Positions 9,683 through 10,777 of a stretch of 32,000 bases of DNA are shown here, piece by piece. Origin of the DNA: Wallemia ichthyophaga EXF-994 (lineage: Eukaryota; Fungi; Basidiomycota). A program made the translations under genes and the position numbers. Where the stretch lies: assembly GCF_000400465.1 (NCBI RefSeq), contig NW_008806278.1, forward strand, positions 172,592 to 204,591, read 5' to 3'. The notes under the pieces are model-generated. The model did no database searches. It worked only from the letters and a program-made list of their open reading frames with translations, and was not told the DNA's origin. Every line of letters starts with the position of its first letter. The first letter of the stretch is position 1.

Positions 9683-10777
9683 ATGACTTCGTTGCTAGAT
9701 GCTATAAGAGATGTTACTACTATTGATTTAGACGCTATTGACGTCGATGTCGTTACAAAGTACGCGCCATTTAGGGACATGACTTGCAACCAGTTCATTG
9801 TACAGTCTGTGCTTACGATGCCTGAGCACGCCCATGTTCTTGCATTCGCCGTCGATGAAGCTTTAAAGTCGGCAAAAGAGTTTGGGGTCGACGTCACCGA
9901 CTCTACTTCATTCGAGCAATTAGTGGTAGACATTGCATCTGTGAATGTAATCAAGGAAATCAAACCAAGATTGCATCCACAGGGATTAGTGTTGTTGCAG
10001 ACATGCTGTTCGAAGCTTGGCGATGTTAATGACATAGTCAAACATTGCGAGCAGATTGTTAAAACATTTGAAAAATACGGTATCAGCAGTAAGGAGTGCT
10101 GTATCAAAGTACCTGCAACAGTAAATGGCCTTAAGGCTTGCAAGTTACTCTCTCAAAGTGGTGTCAACACGCTCGCTACTACTGTGTTTTGCACTGAACA
10201 GGCACTTGCTGCAGCAGAAGCTGGTTGTGTTGCTATCTCACCGTATCTCAATGAATTGGATGCACATTTCAATAGGAAATTCTACGTCGACTACGCAAAT
10301 CCCGCTAAAGAATCACCAGGTGTGAAACTCACACACAAAATTCAACGTTATTATCGCACCGCCAATATCAAAACGCAGGTTAAAGCAGCATCGTGAGTAG
10401 TTTGAGAGCTAATCAAAAGTTTTTGACAATGCTACAGATTTATAGCTCCTATTGATGCAGTAGCAATGGCTGGAGTAGACGCTATTACAGTAGGACCAAC
10501 AATTCTAGAAGGTCTAGCAAACACACAAGTCAACGACCAATATAGTGTGATTCTCAAAGACGCTATTGCTGCTTCAAGAGAGCAGGAAGAAATCCCCGAA
10601 CAAATCACTTGGCTGGATGAGCAAGCTAATAGACTGACAGCTGCAATGGAGGACCCTCAAGTCAAAAGATTACAAGGACGCGCCAACGAAGTTTTCACCA
10701 ACGCTGAGGAGCAATTGAGAGCTTTGGCTAAAGTGGCAATATTGAATAAGAGGCAACCACATCCAGAATCACTATAG
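9683..10777 (+). CDS. Transaldolase/fructose-6-phosphate-aldolase family protein (349 aa, intron 10393-10437), divergent active site
   Basis: D17, T-C-N36, Schiff-base K142 in CIKVPAT, NTLATTVF, QALAAAEAG, ISPY and ASF...AGVDAITVGP align by eye with E. coli TalB at a +10/+11 offset. Confidence 0.88.

Follow-up and report, generated by a model that had tools for sequence, protein, structure and literature searches.

Does a fungal protein that is named a transaldolase in the databases still act as one when the residues that define a transaldolase have been replaced? This question is raised by a gene at positions 9,683 to 10,777 of a 32,000-nucleotide stretch of the genome of Wallemia ichthyophaga EXF-994 (contig NW_008806278.1, positions 172,592 to 204,591; hereafter the window), a member of the Wallemiomycetes within the Basidiomycota. 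An initial annotation, made from the sequence of the window, had described the product as a natural fructose-6-phosphate aldolase (FSA)-type enzyme without phosphate-binding arginines, and had predicted that it acts on non-phosphorylated sugars. As a prediction, this functional reading is supported by our analysis: the residue pattern is conserved family-wide, no lysine or arginine substitutes for those that were lost, the genome encodes a second protein of Pfam family PF00923, and a gene cluster of the Lipomycetaceae suggests a link between an ortholog and polyol metabolism. We estimate at roughly 55% the probability that the protein is a functional class-I Schiff-base aldolase with a TalB-type barrel, an active site in the aldolase state and a phosphate-free pocket, which would use dihydroxyacetone (DHA) and free sugars in a polyol/ketose route.

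The gene consists of two exons (Table 1), and its coding sequence of 1050 nt specifies a 349-aa protein of the TAL/FSA family. The spliced translation is 100% identical, over the full length, to "hypothetical protein E3P92_02251 [Wallemia ichthyophaga]" (P0001), for which UniRef gives the name "Transaldolase", the label that the initial annotation had expected from automated pipelines. The locus matches contig KE007228.1 (GCA_000400465.1) as well as several population-genomic assemblies. Because the codon of S237 is split by the intron (TC before it, A after it), I239 becomes visible only after splicing, as had been noticed before. According to the secondary structure of an AlphaFold2 (AF2) model, exon 2 contributes F238, I239, barrel strand 8 and the C-terminal helices. 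The PF00923 (TAL_FSA) profile matches residues 16-330, that is the whole barrel, with E=1.6e-40 (139.7 bits, cut-off 27), and K142, D17, N36 and T166 are aligned and invariant, as expected of a member of this superfamily.

The numbering relative to Escherichia coli TalB was checked in three ways: by phmmer against the TalB chains in the PDB, by a MAFFT alignment with 150 family members, and by profile-profile alignment (hhalign) of a 45-sequence alignment of the fungal clade described below with a 28-sequence alignment of canonical transaldolases (TALs), the first row carrying the TalB numbering. The two profiles aligned with a probability of 100% (E=3.5e-63). All three alignments agreed on K142=K132, L164=N154, T166=T156, S186=S176, Y188=F178, E191=R181, S237=S226 and I239=R228. 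The equivalent of E96 was placed at Q100, next to a gap, by the single-sequence phmmer search and at Q106 by MAFFT and hhalign; the two profile-based alignments, together with an AF2 strand comprising residues 103-106, settle it as Q106. The residues that the initial annotation had listed as retained (D17, N36, K142, T166, S186 and S237) all stand where it had placed them, and its three switches to the FSA state were reproduced by the alignments, with Q106, L164 and Y188 in place of the E96, N154 and F178 of a transaldolase sensu stricto (EC 2.2.1.2). Both phosphate-binding arginines are lost as claimed, R181 to E191 within the motif ISPYLNEL (from residue 185) and R228 to I239 within ASFIA (from residue 236), so that S237 alone is kept of the transaldolase phosphate site. 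The catalytic state of FSA (Gln59/Leu107/Thr109/Tyr131) is found in Q106, L164, T166 and Y188. Its phosphate site (Arg134, Lys168) is not, the equivalent positions being E191 and I239. The mapping of TalB to FSA positions follows established knowledge and PMC3962226.

These states have been studied by enzyme engineering, and the literature facts cited in the initial annotation could be traced to a single paper (PMC3962226): TalB F178Y is a DHA aldolase, the F178Y/R181E variant has a better affinity for unphosphorylated glyceraldehyde, R181 of TalB is needed to bind phosphate, and the A129S exchange makes FSA 17-fold better in DHA use. According to the same source, the stereochemistry of both FSA and TalB F178Y is 3S,4R. 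When the Wallemia protein was compared with PDB sequences, the ranking was led by 3kof (F178Y/R181E; E value 1.5e-25) and 4rz6 (E96Q/F178Y; 2.6e-25), followed by 3cwn (F178Y), 4rz5 (E96Q) and then the wild type (1ucw/1onr). With the DHA-dependent aldolases 3KOF and 4RZ6 it shares the long barrel (TM ~0.8) and the states Q at 96, Y at 178 and E at 181. It additionally carries N154→L, R228→I, P36→Q, A134→P and G180→N, the last three being among further switches that distinguish the whole clade from canonical TALs. With ~25% identity to TalB, it represents an evolved and conserved natural family as opposed to a laboratory construct.

The catalytic state of FsaA (TAL subfamily 5) is likewise shared, Q59/L107/T109/Y131/K85 corresponding to Q106/L164/T166/Y188/K142. 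FsaA catalyses a lyase reaction in which the donors are free DHA or hydroxyacetone; the lyase activity of the Wallemia protein is predicted. FSA is decameric, keeps its phosphate site (R134, K168) and has fructose 6-phosphate as a substrate. The canonical transaldolases, such as Tal1 and Nqm1 of Saccharomyces cerevisiae and human TALDO1, belong to the same Pfam family, fold and length class and share the Schiff-base lysine, D17, N35, T156 and S226, but E96, N154, F178, R181 and R228, present in 28/28 of them, are all missing from the Wallemia protein. Yeast Nqm1 (3cq0) matches less well than TalB. Judged by its residues, this PF00923 member on a subfamily-1 scaffold would in function most resemble TalB F178Y/R181E and FSA.

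The AF2 model, for which the clade alignment served as input, reached very high confidence (pLDDT 96.1, predicted TM-score 0.93), and its strands are predicted at the places expected for the catalytic residues of TAL/FSA enzymes. It superposes on the transaldolases of E. coli (TalB), human, mouse and yeast with a query-normalised TM-score (TMq) of ~0.8; the top Foldseek matches, 1ucw, 1onr and 3kof, reached a TMq of 0.80-0.82 and a target-normalised score (TMt) of 0.88-0.90. In the same list the short chains of the transaldolase/FSA type had a TMq <0.5, and in the PDB sequence search the match to FSA chains was limited to residues 138-196 (E ~2e-8). The scaffold is that of subfamily 1 (TalB type), and the chain of 349 aa is not the short one of FSA (~220 aa). 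The description as an FSA-type aldolase therefore holds for the catalytic residues and fails for the scaffold, which is of the long TalB type.

We then asked how far this residue pattern extends. When 1.84 billion representatives were scanned exhaustively with HMMER, 1,450 relatives were found, of which the best 150 (50%-identity clusters) were aligned. About 100 of these best 150 carry the signature N36-Q37, Q106, K142, L164, T166, S/A186, Y188, E/P/D/Q191, S237 and a non-basic residue at 239, which we use here to define a Q/L/Y phosphate-site-less fungal TAL subfamily. The Wallemia protein has the signature residue at every position. Among full-length representatives of the clade, 48/48 read D-N-Q...Q...K...L.T...[S/A].Y..[E/Q/P/D]...S.[I/V/T], as opposed to N-P...E...K...N.T...S.F..R...S.R in 28/28 canonical TALs. 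Column 239 holds a lysine or arginine in 2% of the clade (1/48) and an arginine in 28/28 canonical sequences, and the comparison of conservation between clade and canonical TALs revealed no newly conserved Lys/Arg that could make up for the loss of R181 or R228. At position 193, K/R is found in 56% of the clade and Asp in Wallemia, where the former phosphate site is occupied by E191, D193, I239 and S110. The combination is more than chance, since it shows little or no variation throughout a large clade.

A second search, seeded with the protein of Pseudovirgaria (P0009), returned 431 clusters (90% identity) at E<=1e-30, and all 114 newly listed matches from Pezizomycotina read D-N-Q-Q-K-L-T-A-Y-[E/Q/other]-S-[T/I]. 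Ten rows of this alignment depart from the two commonest patterns, among them the query, P0004 and P0055, a canonical control. It added Aspergillus including section Nigri, Fusarium, Trichoderma, Botrytis, Colletotrichum and many others to the ascomycete members already found (Lipomyces, Limtongia, Blastobotrys, Debaryomyces, Ambrosiozyma, Ceratocystis, Knufia, Pseudovirgaria, Phlyctema). The basidiomycete members belong to Exidia, Calocera, Botryobasidium, Hohenbuehelia, a Microbotryomycete, Cutaneotrichosporon, Meira and Kwoniella. Clade members are automatically named "transaldolase", "aldolase", "Transaldolase 2" or hypothetical protein. The phylogeny proposed in the initial annotation recovered the Q/L/Y clade without arginines in both Dikarya phyla, and the clade was monophyletic with respect to canonical TALs in a crude neighbour-joining tree without support values. 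Two subclades differ at position 186: subclade A, with Ala186, comprises most Pezizomycotina and Agaricomycetes, and subclade B, with Ser186, comprises Wallemia, Lipomycetaceae, Blastobotrys, Debaryomyces, Calocera, Ceratocystis and Meira. Within subclade B, Wallemia forms a long branch. The Wallemia gene is no unique natural "design" but belongs, as a divergent member, to a fungal subfamily of wide distribution; what is new here is that the signature marks a whole subfamily across both Dikarya phyla, beyond one gene. In the open-access text searched, we found no paper that characterises this subfamily or singles it out.

Some relatives deviate from the signature. A few basal sequences combine Q/N/Y with retained arginines. 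P0040, from a Joint Genome Institute metagenome, and P0109 are Q/N/Y and keep R191, P0109 also R239; P0095 and P0136 have Y188 together with both arginines. By their residues, these four look like natural fructose-6-phosphate aldolases on a TalB scaffold, intermediate between canonical TALs and the clade. Nested in subclade A is a subgroup (P0034, P0038, P0039, P0047, P0072, P0079, P0124, P0152; e.g., Phlyctema vagabunda) with Met at the E96/Q106 position, Phe188 and neither arginine (mostly E191). With Met106 and Phe188, it lacks the acid/base residue of transaldolases as well as that of FSA. An identity of the clade with the peroxisomal Tal2/Tal1-2 of methylotrophic yeasts was rejected: Tal2 is defined by a terminal -SKL (PMC6052537), and a type 1 peroxisomal targeting signal was found in 0/57 C-termini of the clade and this subgroup, the Wallemia protein ending in ...HPESL. 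Domain fusions were also dismissed as functional hints, since P0025 (864 aa) has no second Pfam domain and the fusion of P0031 (1309 aa) to BRCA2 domains is probably a merged gene model.

Syntenic orthologs with intact reading frames (order Sey1 - TAL-like - GH18) are present in two other Wallemia-like assemblies (L014, L015). These orthologs match the window gene in the length and position of the intron and in all signature residues, and the proteins are 87% and 76% identical to that of the window. Between W. ichthyophaga and the closer ortholog, dN/dS was 0.07 (NG86) or 0.11 (YN00); for the farther one synonymous sites are saturated. The protein is identical across the sequenced W. ichthyophaga strains (11 contigs). 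The Wallemia orthologs are under strong purifying selection. All three of them have C35, L102, C109, L112 and E138 (codons within 9785-10096) at positions that read S/T35, R102, P/A109, A/S112 and R138 in both the clade and canonical TALs, and the region of the active-site strands is rich in cysteine (TCCS, ECCIK). This suggests a lineage-specific remodelling in Wallemia, possibly linked to halophily.

A first indication of a pathway came from the neighbourhoods of orthologs. Lipomyces doorenjongii, a second Lipomyces assembly and Limtongia smithiae share the same arrangement of five genes, in the order Dak1/Dak2 kinase, Zn2Cys6 transcription factor, sugar transporter of the major facilitator superfamily (MFS; divergent from the aldolase gene), aldolase and Zn-dependent polyol dehydrogenase. 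The aldolase of this cluster is of the S186 type and belongs to subclade B, like that of Wallemia. Among solved structures, the dehydrogenase is closest to xylitol dehydrogenase (7y9p, 2e-87), ketose reductase and sorbitol dehydrogenase. Such dehydrogenases yield D-threo (3S,4R) 2-ketoses (D-xylulose, D-fructose, L-sorbose), the stereochemistry that the TAL/FSA family handles. The cluster fits a conversion of polyol to free ketose, of ketose to DHA and an aldehyde, and of DHA to dihydroxyacetone phosphate (DHAP). This is the kind of phosphate-free polyol/ketose route at which the initial annotation had guessed. No description of the five-gene cluster was found in the searchable literature, and the Lipomyces and Limtongia cluster promoters yielded no convincing shared Zn2Cys6-type CGG/CCG motifs or 9-mers. 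In Limtongia, a hexokinase and a short-chain dehydrogenase/reductase (SDR) gene lie just downstream. The Pseudovirgaria ortholog adjoins an SDR and an aldehyde dehydrogenase gene. The seven neighbourhoods examined besides these were uninformative, including that of the Exidia ortholog, which is flanked by O-methyltransferases. This is usual for genes of fungal primary metabolism.

We infer the following mechanism. K142 would form the Schiff base with a dihydroxyacetone-type donor, and Y188, alongside Q106, T166 and D17, would act as the general acid/base in place of the transaldolase E96, as in E. coli FSA. Because the chemistry of Y188 lets the carbanion/enamine be protonated and released, the enzyme would be a lyase rather than a transferase. 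Uncharged, non-phosphorylated aldehydes and ketoses would be preferred because E191 and I239 replace the phosphate clamp of R181 and R228, and S186 would favour DHA over hydroxyacetone as the donor. The likeliest reaction would be the reversible split of a free (3S,4R)-ketose, for which D-fructose, D-xylulose, L-sorbose or similar sugars are candidates, into DHA and an aldehyde. In the putative route, a polyol or ketose would be taken up, the polyol oxidised to the ketose by a polyol dehydrogenase, the ketose cleaved between C3 and C4, and the DHA phosphorylated to DHAP by a Dak kinase; the reverse direction may also be used. The aldolase chemistry, the non-phosphorylated substrates, DHA as the donor and the role in a pathway are the predicted parts of this scheme, and its least secure step is a specific role in Wallemia.

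Among the alternatives, an aldolase with another donor, or with neutral or cationic substrates of a different class, survives best, and we regard it as unlikely. Substrates could be tetruloses derived from erythritol or threitol (L-erythrulose <-> DHA + formaldehyde), 1-deoxy or amino sugars, or the precursor of a specialised metabolite. Like the Lipomycetaceae cluster, the erythritol cluster of Yarrowia lipolytica (EUF1, EYK1, EYD1, EYI1) joins a Zn2Cys6-type factor and a polyol dehydrogenase to a Dak-family kinase, EYK1, which is an erythrulose kinase (PMC5992420), and by this analogy the Lipomycetaceae cluster could serve a tetritol. The Yarrowia cluster, however, contains TpiA2- and RpiB-type isomerases and no TAL-family gene, whereas that of the Lipomycetaceae lacks isomerases and contains an MFS transporter and a TAL-family aldolase; Wallemia is without any such cluster. 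The conserved acidic residue E191 could be the partner of a cationic group or a hydroxyl, Ala186 of subclade A is the hydroxyacetone-preferring state in FSA, and the O-methyltransferases of Exidia would suit specialised metabolism. Against these points, S186 of the Wallemia protein is the DHA-favouring state, the release of formaldehyde would be toxic, and secondary-metabolite core genes are absent from the vicinity of every ortholog examined.

It is distinctly unlikely that the protein is a transaldolase for free sugars, which would move a DHA unit among non-phosphorylated ketoses and aldoses (free C4-C7 sugars, polyol precursors) and never release DHA. Loss of the phosphate site would be expected here just as for the free-sugar aldolase, the scaffold is that of a transferase (TalB type), the idea has an analogue in sulfofructose transaldolase, and the nested subgroup of subclade A has F188, the transaldolase state, along with M106. 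In the main clade, Wallemia included, Tyr188 is nevertheless invariant, and a tyrosine at the F178 position confers release and uptake of free DHA in FSA and engineered TalB (PMC3962226). The Dak-family kinase in the Lipomycetaceae cluster is also more easily explained by free DHA.

Sugar-metabolism models for fungi count such paralogs as redundant or plain transaldolases (PMC6231085, PMC13158570), and the Pfam match, the TalB-type fold and the retained Schiff-base lysine, D17, N36 and T166 agree with an ordinary pentose phosphate pathway (PPP) isozyme (EC 2.2.1.2), as in the pairs Tal1/Nqm1 of yeast or TalA/TalB of Aspergillus niger. We consider this very unlikely: the five residues that are invariant in canonical TALs have all been replaced, F178Y by itself makes TalB an aldolase and R181 is needed for phosphate (PMC3962226), and another PF00923 protein of the genome is available for the PPP. 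By a published count, W. ichthyophaga has 2 PF00923 and 2 Dak1/Dak2 proteins (Zajc 2013, PMC3849046 Table S1). The initial annotation had called for confirmation of a separate canonical TAL1, for which the second family member in this count is a candidate. The case that the gene is the only transaldolase homolog of its genome, named there as fatal to the proposal, does not apply. Least probable of all is a catalytically dead or moonlighting pseudo-enzyme with a structural or regulatory role: the long Wallemia branch with altered conserved residues (R138→E, S35→C, R102→L) and the reported low expression of the Neurospora crassa paralog NCU06142, a possible clade member, would suit it, but the aldolase-state residues D17, N36, Q106, K142, T166 and Y188 are intact, dN/dS is ~0.1, the AF2 model is very confident, and the protein is identical in all 11 W. 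ichthyophaga contigs.

Several observations weigh against the free-sugar aldolase that we prefer. Biochemical data for members of the clade are absent from the searchable literature, and the lack of a substitute lysine or arginine in the phosphate pocket was judged from alignment columns. The full cluster occurs in only 3 of the ~11 neighbourhoods examined, all of them from Lipomycetaceae, and it does not prove DHA as the product because Dak-family kinases can be erythrulose kinases. The Wallemia protein forms a long branch and has replaced residues that are conserved elsewhere (S35→C, R102→L, P109→C, A112→L, R138→E), so that its specificity may not match that of the other clade members. A metabolic gene cluster at the Wallemia locus was rejected, since the neighbours are housekeeping genes. 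Finally, neither the protein sequence nor the word "transaldolase" occurs in the differential-expression table for 10% vs 30% NaCl (Zajc 2013).

Salt regulation of the Wallemia gene was rejected on this last ground, and neither the NaCl expression list nor the gene neighbours revealed a Wallemia-specific link to osmoadaptation. In the same comparison, one of the two DHA kinase genes, GME2514_g, was ~5-fold up at 30% vs 10% NaCl (RPKM, reads per kilobase per million, 17 -> 89), and isocitrate lyase and phosphoenolpyruvate carboxykinase were strongly up (PMC3849046 Table S6). Because the DHA kinase is induced, DHA turnover would appear to rise when salinity is high, although the aldolase-like gene does not figure in the list.

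FSA and TalB F178Y are workhorse biocatalysts, and much of their engineering has been aimed at unphosphorylated substrates and DHA. The physiological role of DHA-type aldolases, E. coli FSA included, is a long-standing question. If the aldolase reading is true, a large natural family already combines the engineered states, hidden under the label "transaldolase", and would provide new enzymes including versions from halophiles and xerophiles. Fungi would then split or build free ketoses between C3 and C4 in unphosphorylated form, a route that is absent from current models of fungal sugar metabolism. Such models may mis-assign flux and gene essentiality because they count the paralogs as redundant PPP transaldolases. 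In polyol-accumulating extremophiles like Wallemia, the reverse reaction could join glycerol-derived trioses into hexulose or pentulose precursors of polyols without ATP, and the Lipomycetaceae cluster would make the hypothesis testable by genetics in a tractable yeast. We put forward only tentatively, at somewhat less than even odds, the broader proposal that the clade consists of pan-Dikarya phosphate-independent DHA aldolases, mis-annotated in hundreds of species, which would constitute an undescribed non-phosphorylative branch of sugar and polyol metabolism with the Lipomycetaceae cluster as its first "operon-like" signature.

Some "second transaldolases" of model fungi were also considered. 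A. niger talB is regulated by XlnR and raised in a xylulokinase mutant on xylose (PMC8140973). Section Nigri does have clade members, and talB (NRRL3_04473) may be one of them, which is mentioned as a lead only. NCU06142 may likewise belong to the clade, as may ZT3D7_G3651 of Zymoseptoria tritici, which lies in a quantitative trait locus for osmotic stress and adjoins an FGGY sugar kinase gene.

Table 1. Coordinates of the Wallemia gene, of its active-site codons and of neighbouring genes in the window, and of the Lipomycetaceae cluster on its own contigs
Feature	Position	Strand	Remarks
Exon 1	9683..10392	+	codons 1-236 and first 2 bases of codon 237; open reading frame 9683..10396
Intron, 45 nt, phase 2	10393..10437	+	GTGAGT...CTAAT (branch-like)...CAG; interrupts S237 codon
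Exon 2	10438..10777	+	last base of codon 237 to TAG stop at 10775-10777
Q106 (CAG)	9998..10000	+	= TalB E96, FsaA Q59 state; hhalign; Q in 48/48 clade, E in 28/28 canonical
K142 (AAA)	10106..10108	+	predicted Schiff-base lysine, = TalB K132; invariant in clade and canonical TALs
L164-A165-T166 (CTC GCT ACT)	10172..10180	+	L164 = N154 (FsaA L107 state); T166 = T156, retained
S186-P-Y188-L-N-E191	10238..10255	+	S186 = S176; Y188 = F178, aldolase switch; E191 = R181, first phosphate arginine lost
S237	10391-10392 + 10438	+	= TalB S226; codon split by intron
I239 (ATA)	10442..10444	+	= TalB R228, second phosphate arginine lost; profile alignment
GH18 chitinase	10977-12552	+	directly downstream of aldolase gene; syntenic in all Wallemia assemblies
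His_Phos_1 gene	12634-13374	-	two genes downstream; motif RSYNVPPP
Ccr4-like LRR/Exo_endo_phos gene	22315-24015	-	
GH81 endo-beta-1,3-glucanase	27272-29110	+	
Five-gene Lipomycetaceae cluster	L001 1770-10992; L002; L017 3034-13789		

The neighbours of the Wallemia gene encode Sey1, a glycoside hydrolase family 18 (GH18) chitinase, phosphoglycerate mutase, RPN11, phenylalanyl-tRNA synthetase (PheRS), Bsd2, an E2 lipoyl transferase and a Forkhead protein; farther out in the window lie genes for a Ccr4-like nuclease with leucine-rich repeats (LRR), a mitochondrial carrier and a GH81 enzyme. Scans of the window for tRNAs and tandem repeats revealed nothing relevant. By its sequence, the His_Phos_1 gene reads as a cofactor-dependent phosphoglycerate mutase, a glycolytic housekeeping enzyme and no sugar-phosphatase partner of the aldolase. 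In three of the population-genomic assemblies (L004-L006, 12952-16460, corresponding to ~12634-16142 on the minus strand of the window), phosphoglycerate mutase, RPN11 and PheRS-alpha are fused into one 862-aa model. GCA_000400465.1 keeps them as three genes, and the merger is an annotation artefact.

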